In this document: one piece after another, positions 1-31,806 of the stretch
Position numbering within the stretch: the first letter of the stretch is position 1
Layout of the letters: every line of letters begins with the position of its first letter
NCBI RefSeq assembly: GCF_000143415.4
Contig: NW_003314340.1
Coordinates: 1-64,000, forward strand
Direction of reading: 5' to 3'
From: Selaginella moellendorffii
Taxonomy: Eukaryota; Plantae; Lycopodiophyta
Length of the DNA stretch: 64,000 bases
Notes under the pieces: model-generated
The model's input: only the letters and a program-made list of their open reading frames with translations
What the model was told of the DNA's origin: nothing
The model's database searches: none
Translations under genes and position numbers: made by a program

Positions 1-1718
1 AAAAGACCACCCGTAAAGACCACAGCAGACGGCAGAGCACAGGACGGTAGATGCGATTGTTTAAACGTGTAGCTAAGCAGGACAGCGACAAAATCCTTGA
101 ATGCCCTCGCTAACGCCTCTCATTGTGTTGTGACAGAAGTCCAGAGAAGATGGCTTGGCTGGCCGGGATAGAGATTGGCAAGGGAGCTACAGAAAACTCC
201 AGAGCAAGGCTGGGATCTTCCTGGAAGTTTGAGACGAAGAACGTGTTACAACCCCAAGTAAGCTTTGCTTTCAGCACAGTTTTAAATGAAATCGATCGCT
301 TGCGCAAATTGCGAGATCATGGAACGTGATCGCCATGATGTTTGTTCCAGCGCCGGTAAAAAGGTACGAAGAGCTCTAGGACGAGACAAGACCGTGAAGC
401 TTAGAAAAAAGAAAAGCGAGAAAGTATGTGCTGGCTGGCTGTTTTGGAAGTAAGGCTGCGCGATCCAGCTCGTATTTCCATCGCCCAATTACACAGTGTA
501 AGCGGACAAGCTGGAAGGAATCGCCACGCCTCCATAGCTTAGCTCGCGACTAAAGAGCTTGATTTTTGCAGTGGAATTTTCCTCGTGAGAGGGGAATCGC
601 AAAGAGGTTGTGGACAAAAGAGCTCGCGAGAGATGGCTTTGGATTAAGGAGTAGCTGTGCAGCTCTGGTCGCTCTTTCACTCGGCGATGGCGACAAAAGC
701 TTTGTTTATGTCTTTGCTCCTGTCAGCTGGCTAAAGAGGAGATGGGAGAAATAAATGTACTGTAGCCATACGCTGGCTGGTACGTACGAGAGAATACGCT
801 AGAAAAAGTTCTCTACTATAGCTTGATCTCGGGCTTGATCTCGTGAGCTTTTCTTTTTATCGCGATGGTGACAAAGAAGAATTCTTTCTCCTCGTGATTG
901 ATCAAACAAGCTAGCTTTGGAAAGAGTTTTTTAAGGCGATCACATCGCTCTATAGAGAAGCTTGCCTGCCATTTGGAGCTGCTATAAGCTACAGAGCTAA
1001 TCAATATAGAGGCACCATGGAAATCCAAAGCGATCGAGATGATCGAGCGATGGATTGTGGTGGAGCGAGCAACAATCTGTCTCGACCATCCTGTGAACGA
1101 ACCACCGATCGAACGAACAAAACTAAGAACACCCACCAAACTTCCACGGGGGACCGGTTGCTCTCGTGCCTTTCGTGCTAGAAACCCACTGCAAACTTAC
1201 TACCCACTCGCGGGATTGATGGGAACGAACCTGTTATCCACGCCTAGATCTTTAAGAACTCCTGGCGAGACGCGACGGAAGCGTGGAGCTCGCCTGCCAG
1301 ATCTGCAAGACCCAAGTTAGAAACAGCCCAAGAAGGAAGAACGCCATGGATTTGGAGATCTGGAGATCTGGAGAGAACCAAAGTTCCTTATTGATGCCAG
1401 AGTGTGGCAAAAGAAGAGATGCTACAAATGCCCGCCAGGAACGAAGCTACATTAGAGAATGTAGCTTCCCGCGAGCCCCCTCGTCGCCCCCGCAAGATCT
1501 AAAGAGCCTAACTAGACCCACAAACCAAAAGAGAGAGAACATACCCAACCAAGAGAGAGAGAGAGAACCTCTTCACAGTAGCAAGAATGCTGGCTGGAAA
1601 CCCAATAGAGATCTCGAAGAACAAGCATCGGCTATGAAGCGATCGATCCCTCCGCCCTCTTGATCCGAAAGTCTTTTATGACGAACACACCAAAGACGAG
1701 TTTTCTTTCTTTTCTTTC

Positions 1719-1763
1719 TTGCTGCCACTGCTGCTGCTGCTGCTGCTGCTGATACTGCTGCTG
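1719..1763. repeat. Imperfect (CTG/CAG)n trinucleotide microsatellite, with nearby GA/CT tracts (about 1530-1566 and 1790-1815)
   Basis: Directly visible gctgccactgctgctgctgctgctgctgctgatactgctgctgcc. Confidence 0.9.
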
Positions 1764-1909
1764 CCGAGCTGATAGATTGACCGAGAAGATCGAGAGAATA
1801 GAGAGAGGAGAGAGCGCGACGAGAACAATTTTTTTTTCTTTTCCACTTTCATTTCAAAGAGAGACCTCGAACGAACGAACGAGCGACGAAGGAAGAATGA
1901 TCATGATCA

Positions 1910-2134
1910 TCAGTAAGTGTGGTATGGATCCTGCGTGAGCAATTGCCGGGTCGCGTGCTCCAAGCGGCTGCCAAGATCCAGGACTTGCTGCTGCTGCTCC
2001 AGGCTGAGATCGTCCACCTCGAGGCCGCCGCCACCAAACGACTTGGTCAGGCGCGCGGCCTCCGCCACCGCCAGCAACACCACCACCAACATCACCACCG
2101 CGAGCACCTTGTTCAGCACCTTCCCGGCCTCCAT
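1910..2134 (-). CDS. Small secreted peptide precursor (74 aa): signal peptide, acidic/Gln-rich prodomain, RQLL site, C-terminal TQDPYHTY
   Basis: ATG in good context (gagaaATGG), GC3-rich codons, basic n-region plus hydrophobic h-region (VLAVVMLVVVLLAVA) and A-E-A/ARL cleavage, tandem stops TGA TGA, intronless. Confidence 0.8.
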   Translation of the reverse strand: MEAGKVLNKVLAVVMLVVVLLAVAEAARLTKSFGGGGLEVDDLSLEQQQQVLDLGSRLEHATRQLLTQDPYHTY

Positions 2135-3229
2135 TTCTCCGCTTCCTGGATGATGGGCGATTCGATCTGCTCTGGAAAAGAGGGGAGAGAGAGCTCTCGA
2201 GCTCCAAACACCTGTGAGAGTGAGAGAGAGATCTAGCTCGCTCGAAGAACAAAAGTGAGAGAGAAAGAGATCGTCTTCTTCTTCGCTTGCTTCCCTGATT
2301 TGCTTTGCTCGCTTTGATCCTTCACTCTAGCTAGAACTTTGGCGTGGTGCGCGCGAGCTCTCGAGCTCTCGAGCTCTTTTCTTTCAGAGGGTTAAAGCTA
2401 TGGTGGTATTAAAGCCAGAGGAGAATGGAGAAAAAGCAGCGAGTCCAGCGAGGAAGGGTGGTCGCTTTGTGTGTTTTTGTGGCCATTAAACGCGTCGTCG
2501 CGTGGTGTCGGTCACCGCGGCGCCGGTCGCACGGCAGCCGCGGCGTACGGAAGACGCGGCAAAACCAGAGGAATCCGAGGCGAATATGCCTGGCATGATT
2601 CTCTTCAGAGCATAGGATGCTTGCTCTGACCCCGTGTGTTTGTGTTTTTCCTGTGCATGATTGCGTAATTGATCCGTTCATGGGTAGGGAGGGCTTTCTT
2701 GTTTCGCCACCTTTTCTCGCGTCATGAAACATTGTTGTAATCATAGGGATCACGCTATGATGTGAATGGTTTGTTTTTTTTCGCGCCAAGCAAACGTGAG
2801 CGAGTGGATCACGCGTGTTCGATCGCGGTGACTTTTGGAACCCTTCCCATGCAACTTCTCGCGAGTGGCGTTGTTTTGATTGTTTCAATCAGCCGGGAAA
2901 AGAACCTTGACTTGATCCAACTCTCGTGCACGTTGTTTCACGAGATCGCGGTTTCCGGAGATCTTCTTGTTTACCATTTCCCTTCGCGAACTTCTAGAAG
3001 CCACCTGGCCAAGTTTCTAATTCTATATCGTGGGATCCCCCGGGGCAACAGTTGGCTCTTGCCGATCAATCGCACTAGCAATAGCATCAACAAAAGAAGA
3101 ACATTTCTAAACAAAAACAAAAACCGGGCGCTCCAGCTACTTCTTAATGGCCTTTGTGGTTGTCAGCCACCATTCCTTGAGGAATTGGCCCGGCCTCTTT
3201 TTTTTTCGATGCTCGACAACTTTGGCAGC

Positions 3230-3460
3230 GTGTACGGAGGAACATGACGCCGCGCGGTGTACGGCAAACCGCAGTGCGGTCACTGTGCCGTCCGCCCGCC
3301 GGACGCACACCTAGCCGGTCGCAGGGAATGGCCATCACCGCCAGCTGGCGAGCAGCAGGCCTTTAACTTTCGGCAGTGTACGGCCAAAACACTATTAAGT
3401 GGCGCACAGCTGGCGGGCAGACAGTTGGCATCGTTAAGTCGAAACTGGGCCGGTGACGTG
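3230..3460. promoter_or_regulatory. Cluster of putative cis-elements: three GTGTACGG (CCGTACAC on minus; SBP/SPL-type GTAC core), CAGCTG/CAGTTG boxes and ACGTGGC (ABRE/G-box-like)
   Basis: GTGTACGG at 3230, 3257 and 3376; another CGTACGG at 2544; GACGTGGC near 3454. Function is inferred only. Confidence 0.45.
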
Positions 3461-3510
3461 GCCTTTGCGTGCGTGGGTTCGAATCCCTAGACGTTTATTA
3501 GGGCTTATGG

Positions 3511-5538
3511 TTATTGTCCGCCACCTTTGAGCGAGGCAATCAGTTTCTTCACGCGGGCGACGTCGTCCCATCGGTTCAGCGTCGCGTACATGTTTGACAG
3601 GGAAATGTATGGACCGGCATTGCCGGGTTCTCGATCGATTGCTTTGGCTGCTACTCGCTCGGCGCGATCTACGTCCTTGTGGTTGCAAGATGCCCCGAGG
3701 AGGGATGTCCATGCCACGGCGAACGGGTGAAAGGGCAGGGTTTCGATCAGGGCCTCGGCTTCTTGCAGCCATCCTGCTTTGGCGAGCATGTCAATAAGGC
3801 TACCGTAGTGTTCTTCCTTGGGCTGGATGTTATGGTCGGATACCATGGAATTGTAGTAGTATATGCCATCCTCGACCAGGCCGGCGTGTGTGCACGCCGT
3901 GAGGACTCCCAAAAGTGTTACCTGGTTGGGCTTGGTGCCTTCCAAGTCCATCTTTTGGTAGAGCTCGAGGGCTTCGGTGCTATGCCCCTGTTGAGCATAC
4001 CCTGCAATGGTGCAAGTCCAGGAGATCTGGTTTGGAGTGGGCATTCTGTGAAAGAGGGCGATAGCGTCTTGCATGCTCCCACATTTGGTGTAAAGATTCA
4101 AGAGAGCGTTGCAGAGAGAAGTGTCTTGTTCGTCAAATCCAAGCGATGCGGCACGCAAGTGGATGAACTTTCCATCTTGCAGTGATCCGATCGATCCCAA
4201 TGCCTCGAGCAAAACCATAAAGGTGACGCCGTCGGGCTTGATGCCCTCGAGATCCATTTGGTGGAATAGCTCGATCGCGGCGTTGCTATCTCCAGCCTGG
4301 GCATACGCCGTGATCATTGTGTTCCAGGCAATCACACCCGGACTCGAGAGCTTTTCGAAAGTTTCCAAAGCTTTTGCAACGCTACCACACTTGGCATACA
4401 TGTTTATCAAGCTGTTGCTCACGAGAGCGTCAACCTTTACAGACGATTCAAGGATTTTCTCGTGAATCAAAACTCCTCGATCGAGATCGCCCACATTCGC
4501 GCAAGCCTCGAGGGCACTCAAGAAGACCGGCGTGTCGAGATCCAAAGGTGGCGACGACGATCCAATAGCCTCAAAGAAGAGCTCCAATGCCTCCTTGCTA
4601 TGCCCATTCTGGGCATATGCCGAGATCATAGCCGTCCACGTCACCCTCGTTCTTCGTTCCATGGCATCAAACACACGGCGCGCCATGGCGGCGCTCCGGC
4701 ACCGCCCGTACAGGCTAACCAGCGCGTTCCGTACGGCGATATCGCCCTCGAATCCAGCCGCGGCGGCGCGCTCCTGGACGAATTTGCCGCGATCGATCGA
4801 CTGAATGCCGGCGATCGCGTTGAGAAATGTGATCCTGTTGTGCCGGACGCCATCCAGATCCATCGCGCGAAAGAGGAACAGCACCAAATCCTCGCGCCCG
4901 AGCCGGGCGTAAGCGCCAATCATCGCGTTCCAGGAGACGAGGGTCTTCTCCTCCATGGCGTCGAAGATGGATCGCGCCAGCTCCAGCGCGCCCAATCGCG
5001 CGAAGGAATCGAGCATCACGTTGTCGAGGACGAGATCGCGGGCGCTGCTGGCGGTGGCCCTGGCGTGGATCGAGCGGAGGAGGGGAAGATCCGCGGTCCC
5101 AGCCGCGGCGATGGCGACGAAAGTGGATCCATTCGGCTTGACGCCCTCGTGATCCATTCTTCGCAGGAGATGGATCGCTTGCGCCAGATGCCCGTTCTGG
5201 GCATATGCTGCGAGCATGATTGTCCAGCTAAAGACGTTGCGATGCGCGATCCCATCGAAGACCAGGCGCGCTTCCTCGAGGCTGGAGCACTTGCCATACA
5301 TCTCCACCAGGAGATTGAGAAGGAATGTGTCACTGGAGGAATGCGTGGAGATCAGGGACGAGGAGGAGGTGATGTGGGCGTGAATCCGGCGCCCCTGCTC
5401 GATCGCCCTGGCATTGCTGCAGCGCTTGACGATCCAGGCACACACCCCCCTGTCGCTGCTGGAATCGAGGCGCTGGATGTCCTCGTCGATTCGATCCAGG
5501 CAGCGCCGGCTCAAGACGTGCTCATCGCTCTTGAGCAT
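3511..5538 (-). CDS. PLS-class PPR protein with C-terminal E domain, no DYW (PPR-A)
   Basis: Intronless ORF with P/L/S motifs (NVFSWTIML, MYAKCGS, HAGLVEDG, HYGSLIDML, WTSLLGAS). First ATG at 5538; the ORF track starts at an upstream TTG (5547). Confidence 0.93.
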   Translation of the reverse strand: MLKSDEHVLSRRCLDRIDEDIQRLDSSSDRGVCAWIVKRCSNARAIEQGRRIHAHITSSSSLISTHSSSDTFLLNLLVEMYGKCSSLEEARLVFDGIAHRNVFSWTIMLAAYAQNGHLAQAIHLLRRMDHEGVKPNGSTFVAIAAAGTADLPLLRSIHARATASSARDLVLDNVMLDSFARLGALELARSIFDAMEEKTLVSWNAMIGAYARLGREDLVLFLFRAMDLDGVRHNRITFLNAIAGIQSIDRGKFVQERAAAAGFEGDIAVRNALVSLYGRCRSAAMARRVFDAMERRTRVTWTAMISAYAQNGHSKEALELFFEAIGSSSPPLDLDTPVFLSALEACANVGDLDRGVLIHEKILESSVKVDALVSNSLINMYAKCGSVAKALETFEKLSSPGVIAWNTMITAYAQAGDSNAAIELFHQMDLEGIKPDGVTFMVLLEALGSIGSLQDGKFIHLRAASLGFDEQDTSLCNALLNLYTKCGSMQDAIALFHRMPTPNQISWTCTIAGYAQQGHSTEALELYQKMDLEGTKPNQVTLLGVLTACTHAGLVEDGIYYYNSMVSDHNIQPKEEHYGSLIDMLAKAGWLQEAEALIETLPFHPFAVAWTSLLGASCNHKDVDRAERVAAKAIDREPGNAGPYISLSNMYATLNRWDDVARVKKLIASLKGGGQ

Positions 5539-5673
5539 CGCCCTCAATGATCCAGAGCGCTAGAGATTGCACTAGACATGCTTGATCGCACGGAAGATCT
5601 CCATGCCAGCGTCGAGCGATGGCTGGATTTGCCAAGAACATAGCTTCCATTGTCAAACTATGACAAGTGATCC
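5539..5673. promoter_or_regulatory. Putative bidirectional promoter (135 bp) between head-to-head PPR genes
   Basis: ATGs at 5538 (-) and 5674 (+), with in-frame stops just upstream of each. Confidence 0.55.
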
Positions 5674-8121
5674 ATGGATGGCTACTTGCGGGAGATCCAA
5701 GGCTGTGCCTCGCTCGATCGCGCGAGAGATCTCCACGCCAGCGTCGACCGCTCGCTGCGATCTGGGGATATCTTCCTCGGCAACAAGATCATCGAGATGT
5801 ATGGACGCTGCGGCAGTCCCGGCGATGCCAGCAGCGCCTTTCGATCCATGCCGGTTTGGGATTCCTTCACTTGGAATCTCTTGCTTGGTTCTCATTGCAA
5901 GAATCGCGATTTGGAGGGCGCTCGAGATGTTTTCGATGGCATGCCCAGCGCGGCCAAGGACATGGTGTCGTGGAACACGATTTTTTCTGCATATGCCCGC
6001 TCGGGGCAACTGTCGGTGTGTCGGGAGATATTTGGAAAAATGCCGGGAAGAGATCTTGTGTCGTGGAACACAATGATTGCTGTCTCTACGCAAGCGGAAA
6101 CTACGGACCATGCAAAGGGAATCTTTGATGAGATGAAAGAGAAGAACTTGGTGTCTTGGAACTCTCTTCTTGCGGTATATGCCCGAGCGAGGCATTGGCA
6201 AAACGCTAAGGCGGTCTTTTTGGCAATGCCGCTGCGGGATTTAGTCGCCTGGAACTCATTGCTGGCTGCGAGCAAAGATCTCAAGGATGGAGTTCATGTT
6301 TTCTTGCATGAAATGCCGGAGTATGATCAAATCTCTTCGAACGCAATGCTAGATGTTTATGCTTCTAATGGGCATGTTGAAGAGGCCAGGGAGTTTTTTA
6401 CTGCGATGCCTTCTCGAGACGTGGTGTCTTACACGACACTTCTTTCGCTAAATGCCGAGGCTGGGGATATAGAATTTGTGGAAAAGACTTTTGCCGTCAT
6501 GCCAGAGTATAATTCTGCTTCCATGAACGCTATGACTCGTGTGTATGCGCGAAGTGGTCATGTAGATGAAGCCAGGAAGGTTTTTGATGAGAACCAATCA
6601 ATAAACTTGATCTCCTGGAACACGCTTCTCACGGCATATGCCCAAAAAGGGTATACTTCGGAAGCAGAGAGCATCTTCAAAGAGATGCCGAAGAGAAATC
6701 TGGTGTCTTGGAACGCAATGCTTGCGGGATATGCCCACTTTGGGTATGTCAAAGAAGCAAAGCTCTTATTCGATGATTTTCCAAAGCGGGACTTGGTAAC
6801 CTGGAACATTATGCTTTCTGCTTTTGCACAAAGCGGGTATTTGGAGGAATCAAAAAAAGTATTTGATGAGATGCCACAGCAAAACGTGGTGTCCTTGACG
6901 ACACTGCTGGGACTCTATGCCCAACAAGGACGCATGCAAGATGTTAAGACATTGTTTGAAAAGGTGGTGGAGTGGGATCTTGTTTCATGGACGTGCATGT
7001 TGATCATTTTAGCCGAGAACGGCGAGCTAGACGAGGCAAAGAAACTGTTTGATAGGTTGCGCGAACGGGATTTAGTGTGTTGGAACGCCATCCTTCGTGC
7101 CTACTCTCGCCATGGCCAGGTGTTAGAGGTGGAAAAGATTTTCCAGCAAATGCCACAAAAGGATCTCACGTCTTGGAATGCGGTTCTAGCTGCGTACTCT
7201 CAAACTGGAGGTTTTGAAAAAACCGAGAGGATGTTTGGACAGATGCCTCAGTGGGATGTTCTAAGCTGGAACTCACGCATGGATGCTTTCGTCCAAGGTG
7301 GTCATTTAAAGAAGTCGGAAGAAATCTTTGATCTGATGCCAGAGAAAGATCAGTTTTCGTGGAATCTCATCCTCGCCGTGTGGATTAAGCTCCATGGTTT
7401 GGAGAAAGCGAAACACGTATTTGATTCAATGCCTTTTAGAAATGTTGCCTCGGGAACGATGATGATATCTGCATATGCCCACGATGGGCATCTTGATCAA
7501 TCACTCGTGATGCTCAGCGTCATGCCTCAAAGGAACGCCTTCACGTGGAATGTGATGCTAGGAGCTTATACTCAGAATGGGAATATGCTCGCTGGAGAAG
7601 CACTTTTTGAGACACTGCCGGAGGAGAACTTAGTGTCATGGGGTGTTCTTCTCGCTGGTTACACCAACAGTGGCAACCATGCAACAAGCTTGGATGTATT
7701 AAATCGCTTGAAGATGATCCATGTTCCGGAAGAGACGTGTTTCGTCACAGCTTTGATCTCGTGTAGCTACCTAGGAAGGATTGAAGAGAGCAAATCGTGC
7801 TTCCTGTCCATGACGCTCGATTATCACATCAATCCCAGCAAGCAGCACTACTGCTGTATCGTAAGCGTCCTCTGCCGCTCGGGGCATCTGAATGATGCTG
7901 TGGAGCTTGTCTCGAGCATGCCTTTCCATCCCGATAGGATGGAGTGGACGTGCTTGCTGGGAGCTTGCAAGAACTTTAATGATCTTGCTAGGGGAGCTAA
8001 AGTTACTAGCCAAGTTCTTGCACTTGATCCAGGTCGTGAGACATCATATGTGCTGCTCGCAAACATATTTGAATCGTCTTTGAAACCGATGATCACTGAC
8101 CGAGCTAGAGCTCGACCATAG
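5674..8121 (+). CDS. PLS-class PPR protein with a long run of 31-aa S/SS motifs and E domain, no DYW (PPR-B)
   Basis: 815-aa intronless ORF with repeated MPxRDLVSWN-type motifs; ends HYCCIVSVLCRSG...WTCLLGAC. Confidence 0.93.
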   Translation: MDGYLREIQGCASLDRARDLHASVDRSLRSGDIFLGNKIIEMYGRCGSPGDASSAFRSMPVWDSFTWNLLLGSHCKNRDLEGARDVFDGMPSAAKDMVSWNTIFSAYARSGQLSVCREIFGKMPGRDLVSWNTMIAVSTQAETTDHAKGIFDEMKEKNLVSWNSLLAVYARARHWQNAKAVFLAMPLRDLVAWNSLLAASKDLKDGVHVFLHEMPEYDQISSNAMLDVYASNGHVEEAREFFTAMPSRDVVSYTTLLSLNAEAGDIEFVEKTFAVMPEYNSASMNAMTRVYARSGHVDEARKVFDENQSINLISWNTLLTAYAQKGYTSEAESIFKEMPKRNLVSWNAMLAGYAHFGYVKEAKLLFDDFPKRDLVTWNIMLSAFAQSGYLEESKKVFDEMPQQNVVSLTTLLGLYAQQGRMQDVKTLFEKVVEWDLVSWTCMLIILAENGELDEAKKLFDRLRERDLVCWNAILRAYSRHGQVLEVEKIFQQMPQKDLTSWNAVLAAYSQTGGFEKTERMFGQMPQWDVLSWNSRMDAFVQGGHLKKSEEIFDLMPEKDQFSWNLILAVWIKLHGLEKAKHVFDSMPFRNVASGTMMISAYAHDGHLDQSLVMLSVMPQRNAFTWNVMLGAYTQNGNMLAGEALFETLPEENLVSWGVLLAGYTNSGNHATSLDVLNRLKMIHVPEETCFVTALISCSYLGRIEESKSCFLSMTLDYHINPSKQHYCCIVSVLCRSGHLNDAVELVSSMPFHPDRMEWTCLLGACKNFNDLARGAKVTSQVLALDPGRETSYVLLANIFESSLKPMITDRARARP

Positions 8122-8385
8122 ATGAGGTTTTTATAAGCATTGGACTTAGCTTCGTTGGACGGAGGTATAGCAACGACCTTTGAACCGTGGTCTATGTGAC
8201 GTCTGATTTTACTGATACCATTGATTTTTTTCTTCCAGGTAAGAACTAGAAGGATTTCACGAAGCAACTGATATACTATATGAATCTCATGAGTTGGGAT
8301 TTTATGGAGGGATCCACAGGACCATCCTTTTAAAAAGAGATCAAGCTAGGAGTTGACTGGAGAACAATTCTATGCTGGAAACGCC

Positions 8386-10829
8386 ATGGCGTTTGCAGCG
8401 TCGGCTCCAGCAGTGTCATCGAGACGGCACTACAACCAAGGCCTTGATTCTGCTCGCTGCATAGTTCGATCCAGGATATCATTTCTCAAGCTTCGCCGAG
8501 TGAATGCTATAGCTCTGGAAGCAGCAGTGAAAGAAGATCCGGAGCAGTTGTCCCCATTGATAACACCAGTAAGTCTCTTGGATTCACATTGAGCTCTCAT
8601 TTTCCTTGTCTTTGCAGAAACGAACTACAGACTTTCAAACACTCTTTCGGAGATTTTGCAAAGTTGCTCAACCTTACTGGCTCGACTCCAAGGAGGGAAA
8701 CCAGGCAATCCTCCGGTTAGCGAGTGTTTTTGCTCTTACGCTTGCTTCCACGGGGACGAGCGTGGCATTTAGCTACCTTGGAAGGAGTTTTGACAACGCT
8801 TTGACAAGTAAGTGTGTCCAGATCTATCAGATTTCTTTAAACTTTTCTCCAGGTAAGAATCGAGAGGAGTTTGTCAAGCAGCTGATCTATTATTTGGGGC
8901 TTATGGTCGCAGCACTTCCAGTAAGTCGTTTGAATGTTTGTGCCTTTTTCAGCGTGTAGTTAACTCGCTTGTCTTCGAGGTTTATGTAATCCGCGGATAC
9001 GCACGAGACACTCTTGCTCTTCGATGGCGATCTTGGATGACGAAACGCTACATGGCTCAGTATTTTTCTCAGAGATCCTACTATAACATTCAATCTCTGG
9101 CACTCATGGACAATCCAGATCAGAGAGTTGTGGACGATATCGGCTCGTTCACTCGCACGGCACTTATATTTACCATGACTTTGTTCCATTCCATCACCGA
9201 TCTGGCGTCTTTCAGCGGAATTCTATACAGGATTTATCCACCACTGTTTGGTGTCTTGCTTGTTTACTCCATTGGTGGCACTGGAATTAGTTTCCTACTT
9301 GGAAAGGTATGATTTTCATCTTTTTGTTTTCAGCGAGTTCGTTCTGTTTCCTTGCAGGATCTCATGAACTTGAATTTCGTCCAAGAAAAGAGTGAGGCAG
9401 ATTTTCGATTTGGATTGGTAAGAGTTCGAGAAAATGCAGAGTCCATCGCGTTTTATGGGGGAGAAAAGGATGAGCTTCAGTTGCTGCTGGAACGTTTTAA
9501 GCAAGCTTTTTCCAACTACAGTGTAAGTTTTGCTGGTTTTTCCATTGTCATTCTTTCGACAGTGTAAGCTACTGCATTGTCTTTGCAGAAACTACTCATA
9601 GCTTCGCGAAACCTAAGATTTTTCCAAATTTTTTACACCAACTTGATCCAAATCCTGCCCGCCGCCGTGGTGGCTCCGTTCTACTTTGCTGGAAAAGTCG
9701 ACTTTGGGATCGTCAGTCAGTCTTTCCATGCTTTCAGCTCCGTTCTCTACGACCTCTCCTTGGTCGTGGAGGAGTTTCAATCGCTTAGTTCCTTCTCCGC
9801 GGTTGTAGATCGCCTTGGTACAATTTCCTTCGTTTGCTTGGTTCTCTTCGACCTACCTTTACATTCACAGGTGAATTCAGTGACATATTGGATCAACAAG
9901 GCGTAATGAATGCTTCGGAGCTAAGCACCATCAAATCGATCGAGACCACGGAAAGCGAGGTTCTTATAGAAGTTTCGACCTTGACACTGTTGTCTCCTCA
10001 ACACACACTGACTCTTGTCGAGGGGCTCTCTTTCAGGATGATCGCTGGACAAAATCTTCTGGTCTGTGAATTTCTCAAAGTTTCTTCGTTGCTATCAGAT
10101 GAATAACTCGGGTTTAAGACCAGGTAACTGGCCCCAGTGGAAGTGGCAAGACATCGTTCTTAAGAGCTATCGCAGGACTATGGAAATCCGGGCAAGGAAC
10201 CATAGCAAGAAACTCTACCATGGATGTATTCTTCGTGCCGCAAAAGCCATACATGACTCTTGGAACACTCCGGCAACAATTGCTATATCCAACTTGGAGC
10301 ACAGACGAGGAGAAAAAACACGATCAAGGTAGCGAGAATTTTTGGTCTTTTACACGTGAATCTATCACAAGTGTGCTCTCATGATCCAGAATCCAAGCAC
10401 AGCGATGCCGACTTGATGGAAATCTTGCGTAGAGTGAAGCTTGAACAGCTCCTGGAACGCTCGTTTCACTTGGACGCGAATGCCGACTGGTCCAGTGTCT
10501 TGTCACTGGGAGAGCAACAGCGCCTGGCTTTTGCTCGATTGCTTCTATCAAAACCAAAGCTTGCGCTCCTGGATGAAGCAACCAGTGCCATAGACGAAGC
10601 AACTGAGGTAAAAGCTTGTCTCTTTGGTTCTCTTCTAAGATCTAGTCACTCTACGCAGGCTTACTTGTATCGACTTCTCCTAGAATCGGGAACTTGTGTG
10701 ATGAGCGTTGGGCATCGCAGCACGCTTCGCGAATTCCACACACACTTGCTTTTCTTTTCCCCGCAAATCTCCGGGACGAGTATCTCGGAGTGGTCATTAC
10801 AAGACCTTCCTCAAAGAACCAACTTTTAG
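8386..10829 (+). CDS. ABCD2: ABC subfamily D half-transporter, ABCD2/YddA-like, probable plastid transit peptide (copy 1, multi-exon)
   Basis: Spliced exons give DNPDQR, the EAA region EADFRFGLVRVRENAESIAFY, Walker A GPSGSGKT, PQKPYM, signature LSLGEQQR, Walker B LLDEAT and SVGHR. GT-AG introns of about 45-60 nt; Ala/Ser/Arg-rich N-terminus. Confidence 0.88.
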
Positions 10830-10879
10830 TAGCAATAGTTCTTCGTCCATTGAAGTGAATAAGTGGAAGACTGGCCATG

Positions 10880-15400: not shown

Positions 15401-15883
15401 TTCAAACGGACGATAGAACAGGTTTTTATAAATATTGGAGCTGGCTGCGTATAGCAACGCCCTTTGAACCGTGGTCTTCTGATTTTACTGAAGAACCGGG
15501 AAGGATTTCAAGAAGCAAGTGATCTACTATATGGGATATTTTATCGCTGCTCTTCAAAAACGTTTTACTTTATCTTTTAGTTCAGGTTTATATGATCGAT
15601 GGCGAGTTCAGTTTTTCCTGAGAGGTTCTACTACAACATCCACAGTTTGAGAATGCTGATCAAAGAGTTCTTTTCAGCTCCATTATCACTGATCTTTTCC
15701 CTTTCAGCAGTATTTGTAGAAGATCTATCCACCAGTCCTGACGCACTGGAATTAGTTTCGTTCGTGGTATGTTTCTGATGAAAGTTCTGGTCAATCTCGT
15801 GAGTTGGAATTTTTATGGACCATCCTTTGAAAAAGAGATCAAGCTAGGAGTTGACTGGAGAAAACTTCTATGCTGGAAACGCC

Positions 15884-18318
15884 ATGGCGTTTGCAGCGTC
15901 GGCTCCAGCAGTGTCATCGAGACGGCACTACAACCAAGGCCTTGATTCTGCTCGCTGCATAGTTCGATCCAGGATATCATTTCTCAAGCTTCGCCGAGTG
16001 AATGCTATAGCTCTGGAAGCAGCAGTGAAAGAAGATCCGGAGCAGTTGTCCCCATTGATAACACCAGTAAGTCTCTTGGATTCACATTGAGCTCTCATTT
16101 TCCTTGTCTTTGCAGAAACGAACTACAGACTTTCAAACACTCTTTCGGAGATTTTGCAAAGTTGCTCAACCTTACTGGCTCGACTCCAAGGAGGGAAACC
16201 AGGCAATCCTCCGGTTAGCGAGTGTTTTTGCTCTTACGCTTGCTTCCACGGGGACGAGCGTGGCATTTAGCTACCTTGGAAGGAGTTTTGACAACGCTTT
16301 GACAAGTAAGTGTGTCCAGATCTATCAGATTTCTTTAAACTTTTCTCCAGGTAAGAATCGAGAGGAGTTTGTCAAGCAGCTGATCTATTATTTGGGGCTT
16401 ATGGTCGCAGCACTTCCAGTAAGTCGTTTGAATGTTTGTGCCTTTTTCAGCGTGTAGTTAACTCGCTTGTCTTCGAGGTTTATGTAATCCGCGGATACGC
16501 ACGAGACACTCTTGCTCTTCGATGGCGATCTTGGATGACGAAACGCTACATGGCTCAGTATTTTTCTCAGAGATCCTACTATAACATTCAATCTCTGGCA
16601 CTCATAGACAATCCAGATCAGAGAGTTGTGGACGATATCGGCTCGTTCACTCGCACGGCACTTATATTTACCATGACTTTGTTCCATTCCATCACCGATC
16701 TGGCGTCTTTCAGCGGAATTCTATACAGGATTTATCCACCACTGTTTGGTGTCTTGCTTGTTTACTCCATTGGTGGCACTGGAATTAGTTTCCTACTTGG
16801 AAAGGTATGATTTTCATCTTTTTGTTTTCAGCGAGTTCGTTCTGTTTCCTTGCAGGATCTCATGAACTTGAATTTCGTCCAAGAAAAGAGTGAGGCAGAT
16901 TTTCGATTTGGATTGGTAAGAGTTCGAGAAAATGCAGAGTCCATCGCGTTTTACGGGGGAGAAATGGACGAGCTTCACTTGCTGCTGGAACGTTTTAAAC
17001 AAGTTTTTTCCAACTATAGTGTAAGTTTATTTTTCTGGTTTTCCATTTAATTTTTTAAAAAGTGCTGCATTGTCTTTGAAGAAACTACTCATAGCTTCAC
17101 GCAACTTGAGTTTTTTCCAAGTTTTCTATAGCAACTTGATCCGAATACTGCCCGCTGCCGTGGTGGCTCCGTTCTACTTTTCTGGAAAAGTCGACTTTGG
17201 GATCGTCAGTCAGTCTTTCTATGCTTTCAGCTCCGTTCTCCGCGACCTTTCCTTGGTCGTACAAGCGTTCCAATCGCTTAGTTCCTTCTCCGCAGTTGTC
17301 GATCGCCTGGGTATACTCTTTTCTTCGTTTGCTTGATTCTCTTCGAACTAAATTTACATGCACAGGTGAATTCAGTGACATATTGGATAAAAAAGGCGTA
17401 GTGAATACTTTGGAGCTGAGCACCATCAAATCGATCGAGACCACGGAGAGCGACGTTCTTATAGAAGTGTCGACCTTGACTCTCTTGTCTCCTCAACACA
17501 CTCTGACTCTAGTCGAGGGGCTCTCTTTCAGGATGATCACTGGACAAAATTTCCTAGTATGTGAATTCTTATATTTTCTACTTTGTTATCAGATCACTAA
17601 CACGGCTTTAAAACCGACCAGATAACTGGCCCCAGTGGAAGTGGCAAGACATCGTTCTTGAGAGCTATCGCAGGACTTTGGAACTCCGGGGGAGGAACCA
17701 TAGCAAGAAACTCTACCATGGATATATTCTTCGTGCCTCAAAAGCCGTACATGACTCTTGGAACGCTCCGGCAACAAATTCTATATCCAACTTGGAGCAA
17801 AGACGGGGAGAAAAAACACGATCAAGGTAGCGGGTCTTTTACACGTGAATCTATCACAAGTGTGCTCTCATGATCCAGAATCCAAGCACAGCGATGCCGA
17901 CTTGATGGAAGTCTTGCGTAGAGTGAAGCTTGAACAGCTCCTGGAACGCTCGTTCCACTTGGACGCGAATGCCGACTGGTCCAGTGTCTTGTCACTGGGA
18001 GAGCAACAGCGCCTGGCTTTTGCTCGATTGCTTCTATCAAAACCAAAGCTTGCGCTCCTGGATGAAGCAACCAGTGCCATAGACGAAGCAACTGAGGTAA
18101 AAGCTTGTCTCTTTGGTTCTCTTCTAAGATCTAGTCACTCTATGCAGGCTTACTTGTATCGACTTCTCCTAGAATCAGGAACTTGTGTGATGAGCGTTGG
18201 GCATCGCAGCACGCTTCGCGAATTCCACACACACTTGCTCTTCTTTTCCCCGCAAATCTCCGGGACGAGTATCTCGGAGTGGTCATTACAAGACCTTCCT
18301 CAAAGAACCAACTTTTAG
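15884..18318 (+). CDS. ABCD2: ABCD2/YddA-like ABC half-transporter (copy 2, multi-exon, apparently intact)
   Basis: Same exon structure and motifs as copy 1; diverges mainly from the late TM domain to the early NBD. Confidence 0.85.
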
Positions 18319-18484
18319 TAGCAGTAGTTCTTCGTCCATTGAAGTGAGACTGGCCTTTGGGAATGCGAGCAAGCAAGCGCTTTGCAGTCTTCTACGTTCT
18401 TGCAAGAGTGTGGCGGAGCTCCAGCAGCTCCATGCAACGATCTGGGATGGGCAGGAGACCCTGCTCGGGAACGTCTTGGTTGAG

Positions 18485-20389
18485 ATGTATGGCAAGTTTG
18501 GAGCTGTGGACGAAGCGGGTGCGGCGTTTGATAGCATCCAGCGTCCAAACGTCTTCTCGTGGAACAACATCGTCACGGTATATACACAGAACGGTTTTTT
18601 GGAGCGAGCGCACAGCGAGTTCGACGCCATGACCGAGAGGAACTCCGTGTCCTGGAACATAATGGTGACGGGCTATGCCCAAACTGGGTATCTCACACAA
18701 GCTGAGGCTTTGCTCGAGAAAATGCCACAGTATGGAGTGGTTTCGCTCAGTGCTATGGTTGTCGGCTTTTCCAGGAGTGGCCAAACCGACCAAGCAGAGG
18801 CTACTTTCGAGAGAATTATTCAGCGTAATATCATAACTTGGACTGGGTTTCTAACTGGATATGCCCAGTGCGGGTATATCCATGAAGCTTACGGGATTTT
18901 TAAGAGAATGCCAGCGTGGAACGTTGTCTCATGGACTGCTATGATCGACTTGCTGGGTCAGATGGGTCAGCTCGAGAACGCGAAGACTCTTTTTGATCGG
19001 GTTCCAGAGCTCAATGCTGTGTCTTGGACGGCCATGGTTGCTGCTTATGCCGCGAATGGGCATATCCGAGAGTGTCGAGATTTGTTTGATGATATGCCCG
19101 AGCGCGGTATAGTAACTTGGAACGCCATGCTTGCTGGATTTGGGTCGAGTTTGCAAGCGGGAGAAGCGAGGAGAGTTTTTGGAAGAATGCCTTGGCACAA
19201 CTTGGTCTCGTGGAATACCATGCTTGCTTTGGTTGCTAGGAACGCTGGAAGCCTGGAAGGATTGGATATCTTCCATGGAATGCCTGCGAGGAACTGTAAA
19301 TCGTGGAACCTTGTAGTCCATTGCCATGCCGCGAATGGAGATATGGGGGACGCCGGCAAGCTTGTGTATAGAATGCCGCAGCACAGTGTAGTGACTTGGA
19401 CTTCCATGGTCGTTGGATATTCCTGCAAGGGAAGAGTTGACGAGGCGATTTCCTTGTTTGACTGGATTCCAGAACGGAATGTTGTGACCTGGACGGGCTT
19501 GCTTGCCGGATATGCCCAAGTAAGTGATGTGGGTGAAGTGTTTCGCAGAATGCCGGCCCATAACGTGGTGTCATCGACGGCTGTGATTGATGCCTACGGC
19601 CAGAATGGCCACCTGGTGGCGGCCAAGGAGCTGTTTGACCGGCTCCCGGAAGCCAACGAGTTGACTTTGATAGCCATGCTGGGGGCATATGCTGCCAAGG
19701 GATGCGCATCCGAGTCCAAGAGGCTGTTTGACTCTTCGCCATCGCAGAGCGTGCTTACGTGGAATACAATGGTGTCCACGTACGGAAATAGCCTCGAGCT
19801 CTGTGCCGCAATGGCCATGTTTGAGAAGATGCCCAAGCACAACACTGTGTCGTGGAACGCAATCGTTACGGCAAATGCCAGGAATGGGCATTTGGGGGAA
19901 GCTAGGATGATTTTTGACACGATGCCATATAGGAGCTCAAGGTCGTGGAGCGTGATGATCGATTCATATGCGCTGAGTGGCCAGTGTTTTGAGGCAGTCG
20001 AGATGCTTACACTCGTGATGTGGGAGGGTTTTGTGCCAGATGAGAGTGTATTTACAGGTGTTCTTGCTGCCTGCAGCCACCAAGGCTTGCTCGAACTCGG
20101 TATAAGGCTGTTTTCGTTGATGGTGAGAGATTACTCCATTGCTCCAGCACTAGTACACTTCAAGTGCCTAATTGCATTGCTGACTCGAGCTGGGCAACTT
20201 GATAGTGCAGAGCAGCTTCTCAATGAAATGCCCTACCATCCAGATGAAGTTGCATGGGTGACACTCCTTGCCGGCTGTAGCTCACACTTTGATGTGGGAC
20301 GAGCGTCCTATGCCACTTGCAATTCTAGTGCTCTGCACGTGTTGCTAGGAAATGTGTACGATCAGCAAACATTTCAAATGAGTTTCTAA
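18485..20389 (+). CDS. PLS-class PPR protein (SS-rich, truncated E domain, no DYW) (PPR-C); the open frame extends upstream to 18197 without an ATG
   Basis: PPR motifs from LCSLLRSCKS...MYGKFG to HFKCLIALLTRAG...WVTLLAGC. First in-frame ATG is at 18485; start uncertain. Confidence 0.8.
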   Translation: MYGKFGAVDEAGAAFDSIQRPNVFSWNNIVTVYTQNGFLERAHSEFDAMTERNSVSWNIMVTGYAQTGYLTQAEALLEKMPQYGVVSLSAMVVGFSRSGQTDQAEATFERIIQRNIITWTGFLTGYAQCGYIHEAYGIFKRMPAWNVVSWTAMIDLLGQMGQLENAKTLFDRVPELNAVSWTAMVAAYAANGHIRECRDLFDDMPERGIVTWNAMLAGFGSSLQAGEARRVFGRMPWHNLVSWNTMLALVARNAGSLEGLDIFHGMPARNCKSWNLVVHCHAANGDMGDAGKLVYRMPQHSVVTWTSMVVGYSCKGRVDEAISLFDWIPERNVVTWTGLLAGYAQVSDVGEVFRRMPAHNVVSSTAVIDAYGQNGHLVAAKELFDRLPEANELTLIAMLGAYAAKGCASESKRLFDSSPSQSVLTWNTMVSTYGNSLELCAAMAMFEKMPKHNTVSWNAIVTANARNGHLGEARMIFDTMPYRSSRSWSVMIDSYALSGQCFEAVEMLTLVMWEGFVPDESVFTGVLAACSHQGLLELGIRLFSLMVRDYSIAPALVHFKCLIALLTRAGQLDSAEQLLNEMPYHPDEVAWVTLLAGCSSHFDVGRASYATCNSSALHVLLGNVYDQQTFQMSF

Positions 20390-21321
20390 TCTTTTAAATC
20401 TTGCGTCCCTCCATAAGGCGGAATAAGGATGAACAGTTTTTTTTGGCCATGATCCACCTGATCCTCGCCAGATGATTCTTGGCGAACCTGAGCCGATTCA
20501 GCACTCCACGGACGAGCGTGGCATCGGTGGAGGCTCGTGCTGGCCGCTACAATCAAGGGTAAGCATCCTCAATCTGCAGAATTTGCAACTCCAGCACCAG
20601 AAATATTATGTCCAAAATCATTTTTGGACACATGTACAATAAACATCTTGCCATTTGTATTGCAATTGCTTCTTCATCCTTTTAATCTTTCATTTATGTT
20701 CTTCTCCCAAAAGATGAATTTTCTCATATGATCAAATATGATTACTAATTAGGGTGAAAATTTATTTGATAATAAGTCAATGTCATAAAGGAAAATGCTC
20801 ATTGTAAAAAAAAATTTTCATTAGAACACTTAAACACTCTATTACAAATTAATTTGTGTATGTTCCAGTTTGGATCAATTGATCACAAATATACAACACT
20901 ATCAAGCATGAAATATGCAAATCTACTTTTGCTTTCTAATATCATTCATTTAACTTGGAAATCATCAGCACCCTAGTAACATTTGAAAAGGCATATTCTC
21001 CCAACACCATCATCCCTTTCTCCTCTATTACAATTACCCATTTAGTGAAAGATGTTCATCTCCATTTTTCACAGTAGTAGTGCTGCAATGTGTGCCATGC
21101 CTTGAAAGCAATAGGAGAATCCTTGACCTTCCTCCCATGGAACTCTCTTGATCAACTTGCATTAAAGCTCTTTTAGCTTTATACAAGCTCAGCACCTTTA
21201 ATTCTTGTTTCTGGAAACATGTGTCCAAACTGGTACAAAAGTTCCTCGCAAGGAAGCTTCTTTGAAATGGCAAAGGCGGCTTGTATGAAGGATAAGCAGG
21301 AGAAGCAGGAGAATTGGTAAA

Positions 21322-22512
21322 ATGGGGCTTGATCCAAAGGATGGGGGGTTTCCCATGGTTCAGGATTTGGTTGAGTCTGGCATTGATGAAGTGCCTCAGC
21401 GATTTGTGAAGCCAGCGGAAGAGCGGTCATTCTCTGCAGCAAGGACGGAAGATGATGAGGTTCCAGTTATTCACGTAGCAGAGCTTGACACAGCTGAAGG
21501 CATCGCTAAGCTCGACAGCGCTTGCCGAGATTGGGGATTTTTCCAGGTGAGATCTGCTCAAAAATCCATGACTAACATCTGGTTCAGCTGATTGGACATG
21601 GCATCCCTCCGGAGTTGCTTAAACAGGTGAGGAAGACTGTGAGGGACTTTTTCCGGTTGCCCCGGGAGCAGAGGGAAGCATATGCTATTCGCTCTGATGC
21701 ACCATCTCTAGCCAGCCAGGAAGGATACGGAAGATTCTTCGTTCCTTCGGAGGAGACTGTGCTCGACTGGGGCGATTCTGTTTATCATTTTCTTCCTCCC
21801 ATAAGGAATTGGCCAAGAAATCCTCCAGAGTACAGGTAACATTTTTGAGAACTTTCAGCGTCGTTCTGAATTCCACTCTACAGGAAAGTCGTGGAAGAGT
21901 ACGGCCAGGAGATACGGCCTCTGGCAATCAAACTGCTACAATGCATGGCAGAGGCATTGGGGCAACGTGCCAGTTTTTTCTCTGAAGCTTTCGGTCCTAG
22001 TCCTCATTATGCGATCAGGCTGAACTATTATCCGCCTTGTCCACAGCCAGAGCTTGTGATTGGCCTCAGCCCTCACTCCGATCTCGTGGGTCTTACCGTT
22101 TTGCTCCAAGATGAGGTGGAAGGCCTGCAGGTTAAGAAAGGCGGGCAGTGGAGGAGCGTCAGGTCCATCCCAGACGCGTTTGTGGTGAATGTTGGAGACA
22201 CGGTTGAGGTGAGTGCATGAGGATTCTCAGCTTTGGTTCATAGTTAAAGCTATGGTGCATGGTTTTTGTTGCGTCCCAGATACTAACGGATGGAGCTTAC
22301 AAGTGGAGCACAGAGCTGTCGTCAATAAGGAATGCTCTCGGATCTCCATTGCAACAATTTACGGTCCTGGCCGCGACAGGAAGTTAAAGCCAATTACCTC
22401 GGAAGAAATGCCACCTTTGTACAAGGAAGTCTCTATGGCAGAGCTCCTCGAAGCGTTCGTCAATGGAAAACTGAATGGTAAGGGGCATCTCCAGTTTGTC
22501 AGAATAGGATGA
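21322..22512 (+). pseudogene. 2-oxoglutarate/Fe(II) dioxygenase (SRG1-like) with a 4-nt frameshift deletion in the last exon
   Basis: WGFFQ, NYYPPCPQPE and HSD motifs present. Reads TACAAG-TGGAGCAC versus TACAAGAGCGTGGAGCAC in the copy at 31400-31420, which moves the distal His and RxS out of frame. Confidence 0.8.
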
Positions 22513-23259
22513 GGAAGTATTATGACAAAAATAAAATAATGTGACAATACAGTAAATTATATAAAGATATATATATGTATTGAATGTTTGGAAAGCTATT
22601 TTACTTGTATAAAAGAACAATGCCCTTTAAAGTGTCAAAAATACATGATATGCATGAGTCTGAATTATTTTTATTTTCATTCATTCATTAATTGTTTATA
22701 AAGTTTGTGTTGCCCTCTAAGAAGCATGAAACTGATACATTATAATATGCTTGTACGTTTTATGCCTTCAGCTATCAGTACACCTCTCAAGGAGAGTGGA
22801 CTCACAAATTGATATTTTAAAGGATTTTTTTTTAATGCATGAGCATGCATTGATGCCTATACATGGCAAAGTCTAAGTAATACTGTGTATGCAATTTTTT
22901 TGCATTATATAAATTTCAACTCTATATCAATTTTTTTGACACATTAGGTTCAAAATTAGGGTTTATAGGCATGATGTTTGCTAGTGGGCAAGCTAGATTT
23001 TTTAGTGCATTTTGGATACCACATATTAAGCTCGTGTTTAAAGCTATTTCCTTGGTGAAGGTAATGAAAAACATTTTATGCAACAAAACATTATAATGTT
23101 AAAATCTTTAATGCATGATTAAGATTGCAAAAAATCCATTTGAGAACAAACAGTATAAAAAAGCATTAAAACTATTTCAAACCATGCAATCCAAGGGCTA
23201 TATGCCAAATTTTTGAAGATATGTGACTGCTCTTAAGGCATGCTCAAGTTTTAAGTGCT

Positions 23260-23910: not shown

Positions 23911-24957
23911 AAACTAACATTTCCATGCTTGCTAAAGGAACAAAAGTTGGCAGTTGTGACCAAGAAAGCATTAATAGGCATTCCATTGTAATATATAATG
24001 CTGTGACAAAATGAGAAGCTCTCATTCAATACCTCAATTATGGTGATAGTGCTTCTTGTCCCACTACTCCACATATCACTCATGGATTTCATCTTTACAT
24101 GACATTATAAAAGTAAAAGAAGAGTTCTAGAATATTTATTTCACATAATATTGCATACTTGCTTGTGTGAAATTTATATTATATAATTGTTTGTGTAAAA
24201 CCTTCACTAGATTTGTGGTGACATCATGTTATCTTGGATGACATGGCATCAGTCTTATGTGGCAGTTTAAAGTGTCATGCCTCATACATCTATGATATAC
24301 CTTATGACAAAAATATTATACACATAATCACATTTTGTTTATATAACAATCAAAAGTGATTGTGTGCATAATATTTTTGTATGCAACTCAAAACAAAAAA
24401 ATAAATTCTCAGATGTGTAAATATATAATGCTCTCACAAACAATCATATATTTGTTGCCACGCTATGGCTGGGCACCAAATTAAATTTTGATATTTACAA
24501 AAACACAAATAATATTGTGTTTGTATGTAAGATGTTGTGAAAGTAAGCTTGAATCAGACACAATGGTTGAAACTGTATGAGCTGCTTAAACTTGAGCATT
24601 TGATCACAAAACGAGATCCATGCTGGTCGCTAGTGCCCAACATCACCAATGATCTTGGATAGAATCTATTCACTTCCGTTGCACCTCTGGCTAGCGAGAC
24701 CTTGACTTTTTATATCGATCCATGAGGATCATGCCAAACGTCTTCCACTGTGCCGCACTTGTGAGATGAGGATTTATCACTGACGTGATCAAAGATGATG
24801 TATACCTGTCGAGTAAAGCTTGAGAGATTGCTCCAAGAAATGCAGCGATGTTCTCTGAATGAACCTCTTGGTGCATGTACAATCCATAGAGACAAACACA
24901 TTGCCAAACAGCTCGGCACTAGTCAGCATATACATCCATTTGTGCCAATCTTTAAGC

Positions 24958-26742: not shown

Positions 26743-26986
26743 TCAAATGTGGACCGTTGACTGACCAGCTTTAAATGTCGACCATTGGATTGGCGCCAAA
26801 ATTCGCAAGCTTGCCGATGTAAGCCACAACCATTGAGCAGTGCCGACCACGCATTCACGCCAGGCTTGCAAGGCATGGCTTGGAATAATCTTTGGGCTTC
26901 TTCCAGCCGCCCAGAAGATCGATCACGCAGTGGTAATGCAAAGGGCTAAAGATCTCACTGTTGGAGAGATCATCAAACTTTCTTGC
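26743..26986 (-). pseudogene. Decayed C-terminal fragment of the PPR at 52331-54499
   Basis: FDDLSNSEIFSPLHYHCVIDLL...MPCKPGVNAWSALLNGCGLH, with deletions relative to 54233-54499. Confidence 0.85.
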
Positions 26987-27175: not shown

Positions 27176-27807
27176 GCAGGACATTGGAACTCCGGGCGAG
27201 GAACCATAGCAAGAAACTCTATCATGGATATATTCTTCGTACATGACTCTTGGAACACTCCAGAAACAATTGCTATATCCAACTTGGAGCAAAGACGGGG
27301 AGAAAAAACACGATCAAGGTAGCGAGAATTTTTGTTCTTTTACACGTGAATCTATCACAAGTGTGCTCTCATGATCCAGAATCCAAGCACACTTGGTGGA
27401 AGTCTTGCGTAGAGTGAAGCTTGAACAGATCCTGGAACGCTCGATTCACTTGGACGCGAATGCCGACTGGTCCAGTGTCTTGTCACTGGGAGGGAGAGCA
27501 ACAGCGCCTGGCTTTTGCTCGATTGCTTCTATCAAAACCAAAGCTTGCGCTCCTGGGTGAAGCAACCAGTGCCATAGACGAAGCAACTGAGGTAAAAGCT
27601 TGTCTCTTTGGTTCTCTTCTAAGATCTAGTCACTCTACGCAGGCTTACTTGTATCGACTTCTCTTAGAATCCGGAACTTGCGTGATGAGCGTTGGGCATC
27701 GCAGCACGCTTCGCGAATTCCACACGCACTTGCTCTTCTTTTCCCCGCGAATCTCCGGGACGAGTATCTTGGAGTGGTCATTACAAGACCTTCCTCAAAG
27801 AACCAAC
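27176..27807 (+). pseudogene. 3' fragment of ABCD2-like transporter (copy 3)
   Basis: Starts after Walker A; has deletions, a 4-nt insertion, Walker B D->G (LLGEAT) and a deleted stop codon. Confidence 0.88.
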
Positions 27808-27849
27808 AGTAGTTCTTCGTCCATTGAAGTGAATAAGTGGAAGACTGGC

Positions 27850-31620: not shown

Positions 31621-31806
31621 GGGTCCAAGTATTATGACAAAAATAAAATATTGTGACAATATATGTCTTTAATATAGTAAATGATATATATATATATATG
31701 AATTGAATGTTTGGAAAGCTATTTTACTTCTAAGTGAAAATTACCTAAGAAGAATGCCCTTTGAGCCCCTTAAAGCTCTTTTCTAGGGCTACTGTCAAAC
31801 TCCACA

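Follow-up and report, generated by a model that had tools for sequence, protein, structure and literature searches.

The window, by which we mean the whole 64,000-nucleotide stretch of Selaginella moellendorffii DNA analysed here, contains on its minus strand a 74-codon open reading frame (ORF) that runs from ATG to TGA (2134..1913, with the stop codon at 1912-1910) and is followed by a second in-frame TGA at 1909-1907. The first 26 residues of the product start with MEAGK… and include two Lys, a 15-residue hydrophobic run of V, L and A, and the junction AEA|ARL, a candidate signal-peptide cleavage site that was judged by the −3/−1 rule and hydrophobicity and is a rule-of-thumb call. Beyond this segment come a run of Gly and then a stretch rich in acidic residues and Gln. 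R-Q-L-L occupies residues 63-66, and the product closes with the tail TQDPYHTY (residues 67-74). The putative mature part has four Lys/Arg, seven Asp/Glu and no Cys, with a net charge of about −3. An earlier note on this DNA had listed such features (74 residues, a hydrophobic signal-like start, AEA/ARL, an acidic/Gln-rich part, RQLL, TQDPYHTY and a double stop), and all of them are found in the translation.

By itself the ORF proves nothing, because three other mechanically called ORFs of 78-132 codons, two of them on the opposite strand, overlap the same stretch, and because its hydrophobic run is partly encoded by a degenerate GTG/TTG triplet repeat. It is also unannotated in the source genome, since it was never met as a database protein, whereas the product of the neighbouring PPR gene (P0012) was. 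These three observations would fit a chance ORF in a non-coding or plus-strand transcript that works as RNA, with a GC-rich and repeat-rich stretch keeping frames open. Such an explanation is already at odds with the plus strand of the locus, where ORFs started by ATG are only 13-26 codons long, and with the lack of any Rfam family match at the locus.

The locus is abundantly represented in public sequence data: contigs cross the ORF, and the 801 bases around it are present in 20 runs from eight studies. Contigs from four runs (X1, X4, X6 and X8) were mapped on window positions 1-6000; being assembled contigs, they record neither the strand nor the exact ends of the RNA. Depth over 1401-2400 was 290-430 in X1, 2,700-27,000 in X8 and 4,000-6,800 in X6, and the corresponding values over the neighbouring exon at 135-1534 were 15, 64-390 and 177. 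In these RNA-seq-like contigs the small-gene transcript is covered 25-70 times as deeply as the neighbouring gene. Over the adjacent intergenic DNA (2401-3200) depth was zero or nearly zero, and on the PPR gene at 3511-5547 it was about 10-20 where coverage is unique, a figure that leaves out the repeat-rich part of that gene, which attracts contigs of paralogous genes. The absence or near-absence of depth at 2401-3200, the low depth on the PPR gene and the very high depth over 1401-2400 together indicate that the mapped runs are RNA-like and not DNA. In X4, which is labelled as another organism, the small-gene transcript alone is present, which is consistent with a very abundant mRNA.

Unbroken contigs cover 1768-2383 (X1) and 1768-2374 (X4), with further pieces at 1538-1667 and 1638-1698. 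Between the contigs, 1699-1767 is occupied by a (CAG)n microsatellite, which was skipped in mapping; its (CAG)15 tract at 1720-1764 breaks all assemblies. No credible splice joint between 1400 and 2400 was found in the contigs of the four runs. The small gene is transcribed at a high level as an unspliced mRNA of ~0.85 kb, extending from about 1538 to 2383. At 1538-1667, two allelic forms of the 3′ UTR occur as contigs in three unrelated runs and differ by five substitutions and an AGA insertion at 1610, which is a heterozygosity or two-haplotype signal in the source species.

The orientation of the transcript on the minus strand is suggested by its leader, its start context, an upstream TTTAATA and the shortness of the plus-strand ORFs. 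The ATG of the ORF is the first in a leader of 249 nt (2383 to 2135), an ATG-free leader being obtained in 2.5% of shuffles, and its context is gagaaATGg. The variants among runs, though few, point the same way: the single SNP within the ORF (1970 G>A, GGC->GGT, Gly55) is synonymous, and all four indels (1610, 1800, 1828 and 1876) fall in the 3′ UTR. The features of the locus and of the remainder of the window are collected in Table 1.

Table 1. Positions of the features discussed in the text, in window coordinates.
Feature	Position	Strand	Basis
Candidate TATA-like element TTTAATA	2407..2413	-	sequence; ~30 nt upstream of the outermost contig end; inferred
5′ leader, 249 nt, 0 ATG	2135..2383	-	sequence, contigs, shuffles
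CDS of the 74-residue pre-pro-protein, including the TGA stop	1910..2134	-	ORF, homologues, alignment
Signal-peptide-like segment, residues 1-26	2057..2134	-	two Lys, 15-residue run, AEA|A; equivalent in all full-length members
Variable spacer, residues 27-37	2024..2056	-	alignment; 5 to ~30 residues in relatives
Conserved block 1, residues 38-54 (LEVDDLSLEQQQQVLDL)	1973..2023	-	7 of 10 family-invariant residues; predicted helix from residue 45
Semi-conserved linker, residues 55-62	1949..1972	-	within the predicted amphipathic helix
Candidate subtilase/S1P-type site R-Q-L-L, residues 63-66	1937..1948	-	R-x-L-[LF] in all members (motif scan)
C-terminal tail TQDPYHTY, residues 67-74	1913..1936	-	D69-P70-Y71 family-invariant; disordered in the model
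3′ UTR with (CAG)15 microsatellite (1720-1764, TGC on +) and other short repeats	1538..1909	-	3′ end near 1538 inferred from contig ends, inexact
PPR genes	3511-5547, 5674-8121, 18197-20389, 24958-26742, 28588-29778, 52277-54499, 54500-56284, 60204-62252
Segmental duplications	8319-10858 / 15817-18347; 17670-22606 / 27176-31729; 24303-26986 / 54233-56966 (inverted, ~30 kb away)

Homologues, selection and family anatomy

A word-indexed protein search with the ORF alone gave no match. An exhaustive phmmer search of 1.84 billion cluster representatives yielded six matches (E 4e-9 to 8e-5), all over the C-terminal half, and a profile search added three more proteins, for a total of nine. The lycophyte Diphasiastrum complanatum has four homologues, located on four chromosomes, and the conifer Cryptomeria japonica has one. 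The third group comes from two JGI metagenome samples and Logan run ERR550389, and represents a transposon-rich plant genome of ~34% GC. All of the homologues are annotated as "hypothetical protein". The earlier note had called the ORF an orphan; this does not hold, as the family is common to two lycophyte lineages, one conifer and one more plant.

The homology is robust to circularity when judged from profiles built on separate parts of the family. With a profile of the five lycophyte sequences alone, E values were 7.5e-11 for the conifer protein and 1e-9 to 7e-8 for the third group, and a reverse profile, built without the window ORF or any lycophyte sequence, found the window ORF at E 1.3e-7 (library size 1.8e9 for both). 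All homologue genes whose DNA was read are single-exon, and one homologue contig (L002) spans an entire mRNA that is polyadenylated in the same sense as its ORF. The 5′ leader of a homologue transcript (L004, 1-305) contains four tandem copies of a ~60-nt unit, of which its sister L002 has one.

We found no family paralogue in the 64-kb window or in the flanks of the homologues. In the third plant, a decayed paralogue (L007, 9977-10531), its frame broken by a stop codon, lies between Ty3 and Ty1/copia retrotransposon genes, which shows turnover of family copies there; a 36-residue family fragment (P0010) also comes from this plant. Two scans of JGI metagenome contigs with the family alignments returned 88 and 600 pattern stretches, and none was confirmed by tblastn, so this collection did not widen the range. 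The transposon proteins of the third plant group with JGI proteins only. Some Ty3 capsid-like plant retrotransposon proteins in the JGI annotations are named 'gas vesicle protein', which is an annotation artefact. Among annotated proteins of angiosperms, ferns and bryophytes, in which small ORFs are often left unannotated, no relatives were seen. Small ORFs have been described as frequently overlooked (PMC8462819).

Synonymous and nonsynonymous rates were computed among three close homologues (L001, L002 and L004). Against L001, the conserved core has a dN of 0.057 and a dS of ~0.35 (ratio ~0.16), and the signal segment and spacer have a dN of 0.18-0.20 and a dS of 0.28-0.31 (ratio 0.6-0.7). 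The closest pair, L002 and L004, gives ratios of ~0.5 for the core and ~1 upstream, on very few differences. These comparisons of coding sequences show purifying selection on a C-terminal core of ~37-40 residues. Together with protein-level homologues in distant plants, significant at library scale, and the polyadenylation of a homologue mRNA in the ORF sense, such selection leaves a chance ORF highly improbable and close to refuted. The ORF is almost certainly a real protein-coding gene that is intronless, unannotated and nuclear.

Members of the family are 74-95 residues long after start-codon correction and have no Cys past the signal segment. A hydrophobic run of 14-19 residues is common to the window ORF and the seven full-length homologues; Lys/Arg precede it, and small residues follow at −3/−1 (AEA, VRG, SEA, VWG, VEA or CMA). 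In the third group a longer charged N-terminus (…VWRR…) precedes the hydrophobic segment. One annotated Diphasiastrum model of 39 residues (P0002) comprises the conserved core only. After the signal segment come 5 to ~30 unconserved spacer residues, and conservation then begins sharply in the alignment at [GS][ML]E.

The conserved core of ~37 residues has the motif [GS][ML]E-x-[DEN]-D-L-S-[LF]-x-[QE]-Q-Q-x-x-x-D-[LM], followed by 6-9 semi-conserved residues, and ends with R-x-L-[LF], one to three residues, and D-P-Y-x-[TL]. Ten residues are invariant across the family (E39, D42, L43, S44, Q48, Q49, D53, D69, P70 and Y71, numbered as in the window ORF). Both R-x-L-[LF] and D-P-Y occur in every member of the alignment of HMMER homologues, as the reading in the earlier note requires of the C-terminus. 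In the third group the tetrad takes the form R-[LIV]-L-L and lies one residue nearer to D-P-Y, which is masked by a gap in the MAFFT alignment. The last few residues vary among members in number and identity (HTY, YTKY, HTKY, STNY, STY, SLT or HT). We refer to the family by its motifs as 'DLS-QQ / RxLL-DPY'; the window ORF carries every element of this definition, the single exon included.

The AlphaFold2 model of the window protein, based on a nine-sequence alignment, has a mean pLDDT of 68.5, with one helix over the signal segment (continuous over residues 3-32) and a second over residues 45-67. No structure is predicted for the Gly run or the D-P-Y tail, and in this model the protein is not a globular domain. 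The predicted second helix is amphipathic, with a hydrophobic moment of 1.25 (0.55±0.29 in shuffles, 1.3% of which reach 1.25).

Given the charged start, the hydrophobic run and the small residues that follow it in every full-length member, the protein is very probably targeted to the secretory pathway. The segment could instead be an uncleaved type II signal anchor of a membrane micro-protein whose helix and D-P-Y end would be exposed to the lumen or apoplast and would regulate a partner in the membrane. The single continuous helix over residues 3-32 would suit such an anchor, as would the positive charges ahead of the hydrophobic run and the longer charged N-terminus of the third group. Runs of 14-19 residues are short for a plasma-membrane anchor, however, the small −3/−1 residues are retained in all members, and the segment evolves near-neutrally, as signal peptides do. 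We therefore regard the anchor as improbable and a cleavable signal peptide as the more probable reading of the segment.

Comparison with known secreted peptide precursors

Searches of Pfam with the ORF and all nine members gave no match at E ≤ 1 to the PSK, RALF or GLV models, and only noise otherwise. The best Pfam match was Peptidase_S49_N (E 0.057, on the hydrophobic N-terminus), which we discarded as noise. A profile search of the PDB gave XPB at E 0.07 or worse, on the Gln-rich helix, and no solved structure matches. No paper in the literature searched contains the motif strings of the family or the accessions of the runs and samples, and general searches yielded reviews and no such family. 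A language-model feature search of the ESM Atlas gave scores of at most 0.82, which are leads only; the nearest are clusters of small plant proteins, among them Organ-specific P4-like (0.80) and RGF9 (PF21529, 0.75). A survey of peptide families in non-flowering plants covers CLE, IDA, RGF, CIF, CEP, PIP, Pep, PSK and PSY, none of which is like the present family (PMC8462819). These comparisons agree with the statement of the earlier note that the tail matches none of the motifs familiar to it (there is neither YIYTQ nor a D-Y start). None of the three grounds on which that note would have dropped its reading applies: transcripts are abundant, the C-terminus is kept in the homologues, and the ORF is neither a member of a known family nor a piece of a spliced larger protein. 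On the last, the single-exon structure of all homologue DNA read points the same way as the lack of Pfam and PDB matches.

Precursors of PSK (PF06404) offer one parallel. They are pre-pro-proteins of ~80 residues with a signal peptide and an acidic region, and they have a basic/Leu subtilase site a few residues before a short Tyr/Thr motif that lies beside Asp near the C-terminus. Bryophyte PSK-like sequences also have a conserved region outside the mature peptide (PMC8462819). The present family differs in that no member has YIYTQ, its motif being D-P-Y-x-[TL], in which Pro separates Asp from Tyr. It also lacks the conserved Cys pair, and none of the nine members matches PF06404 at E ≤ 1. We know of no PSK-precursor counterpart of the block E-x-[DEN]DLS[LF]-x-[QE]QQ.

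The layout of the family, with a candidate signal peptide, a spacer and a conserved C-terminal part in which Asp/Tyr and Pro are potential modification sites, parallels that of the precursors of RGF/GLV/CLEL, PSY and CIF peptides, and GLV1 in addition has an S1P/SBT6.1-type R-R-x-L site. In contrast to these precursors, no member of the present family has D-Y in its conserved part or a …PP-x-HN end, and none has a Pfam match to them; the conserved part is 37 residues long and predicted to be helical, not an extended peptide of 13-21 residues. To our knowledge, D-P-Y differs from the D-Y motif of known plant TPST substrates. TPST itself has been reported in S. moellendorffii, mosses, ferns and gymnosperms (PMC8462819).

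A third parallel concerns the tetrad. RALF, PROSCOOP and the pro-regions of type I pectin methylesterases (PMEs) have a basic-x-Leu-Leu tetrad (R-R-I-L, R-x-L-x and R-R/K-L-L, respectively) between the pro-part and the C-terminal product. The Cryptomeria member carries R-R-L-L and one Diphasiastrum member R-K-L-L, which are also the two processing tetrads of type I PME pro-regions. Documented subtilase sites include RRIL in RALF23, RRAL in GLV1 and RxLx/RxxL in PROSCOOPs (PMC13157962). What follows the tetrad is different: it is 7-10 residues without Cys in the present family, whereas the product of RALF (PF05498) is ~50 residues with YISY and four Cys, and that of PME is a whole enzyme. No sequence similarity to RALF, PROSCOOP or PME was found in the Pfam and PDB searches.

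Set against the class of secreted peptide precursors as a whole, the family falls within the usual length (~70-120 residues) and has few or no Cys in the mature part. Conservation is not limited to a short C-terminal peptide and is strongest in a 17-residue block located ~15 residues upstream of D-P-Y. The earlier note had proposed a signal segment, a variable prodomain and a short C-terminal motif. Its R-Q-L-L and D-P-Y tail are conserved as expected, but the acidic and Gln-rich stretch is the best-conserved block, so the functional unit may be the whole core of ~37 residues and not the tail of eight. The layout of a signal-like segment, a spacer and a C-terminal motif with a subtilase-type R-x-L-L is real and ancient. 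In our reading this is an unnamed family within the known class of plant secreted peptide precursors and a credible candidate for a signalling-peptide family. Its conserved pro-part, predicted to be helical, is unusual, and the members found so far come from lycophytes and gymnosperm-type genomes.

Possible processing and functions of the product

We hypothesize that the product is a processed extracellular signal, and give this a probability of roughly 40-45%. The N-terminal segment would act as a cleavable signal peptide for entry into the secretory pathway, and its removal would yield an acidic pro-protein of ~48 residues. Within this, the conserved core from [GS][ML]E could fold as an amphipathic helix with a flexible end behind it. 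An S1P/SBT-type subtilase might then cut after R-x-L-[LF], releasing a 7-10-residue D-P-Y peptide and an acidic helical fragment of ~30 residues. The D-P-Y peptide may bear modifications on Tyr or Pro. The tail peptide, the helical fragment or the uncut core could be the form that acts as a ligand outside the cell.

Several observations count against a signal. In peptide-hormone precursors conservation normally peaks in the short mature peptide, and a best-conserved block upstream of R-x-L-L is unusual for a hormone prodomain. The tail is variable past D-P-Y-x-[TL], whereas the C-termini of ligands are usually fixed. The motif is D-P-Y in place of the D-Y of TPST substrates. Finally, the large excess of this mRNA over those of its neighbours suits an abundant protein with a structural or defence role, or an apoplastic or vacuolar one, at least as well as it suits a hormone.

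An alternative is an abundant secreted or vacuolar protein without a signalling role. The acidic 48-residue form would work through its amphipathic helix in the cell wall, at the surface, or in stress or defence, and R-x-L-L and D-P-Y would serve structure or sorting, for instance as a C-terminal sorting determinant. Such a protein would account for the very high contig depth relative to the neighbours, the presence in X4 of the small-gene transcript only (as for a most-abundant mRNA), conservation that spans the full 37-residue core and peaks upstream of R-x-L-L, the amphipathic character of the predicted helix and the variable extreme C-terminus. It is harder to reconcile with a charge of about −3 and the lack of Cys, which are unlike the known antimicrobial and structural classes of small proteins, and with the lack of an independent fold (pLDDT 68, one helix). 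Moreover, R-x-L-[LF] and D-P-Y have stayed invariant since the lycophyte/seed-plant split, as one would rather expect of a motif for recognition or processing. We consider this alternative somewhat unlikely.

The most specific form of the signalling hypothesis is an undescribed peptide hormone that predates the lycophyte/seed-plant split (>400 million years). It would consist of the 7-10-residue D-P-Y peptide cut after R-x-L-L, possibly with sulfotyrosine or hydroxyproline, and be perceived by a receptor kinase, and it would have been lost in flowering plants or be hidden there among unannotated small ORFs. In this detailed form we regard the hypothesis as unlikely.

Almost all known plant peptide-hormone families were found in flowering plants first and then traced to other plants. 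The present family would run the opposite way, as it is conserved in lycophytes and a conifer and is not detectable in annotated angiosperm proteomes. If the precursor is processed as its motifs suggest, it would provide a new ligand family, and imply a receptor, from the time when vascular plants arose. Even as an abundant protein without a signalling role, it would be a strongly expressed and conserved small gene that escaped annotation, and its defined motif could be used to re-screen fern, bryophyte, gymnosperm and angiosperm genomes.

Neighbouring genes in the window

Next to the small gene, contigs of several runs cover an exon-like stretch without a long ORF (135-1534, depth 15-390) and end exactly at 135, from where they run on for >1 kb that lies outside the window sequence. 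The stretch probably belongs to a spliced neighbour as its long terminal (UTR) exon, and it converges on the 3′ end of the small gene and may overlap it.

Elsewhere in the 64 kb lie at least eight PPR genes without introns, an E motif being present in some of them (Table 1). The product of the one nearest to the small gene matches its own database record at 100% and otherwise relatives from many plants at about 37%. Joints and loose ends of RNA contigs at 4300-5300 stem from paralogous PPR repeats and not from splicing. Also present are segmental duplications of 2.5-4.5 kb with 91-95% identity, which carry PPR genes, including two copies of 594 codons. An ORF at 39284-40216, with a match to the N-terminal and central domains of the acyl acid amido synthetase GH3, is probably one exon of a GH3 gene.
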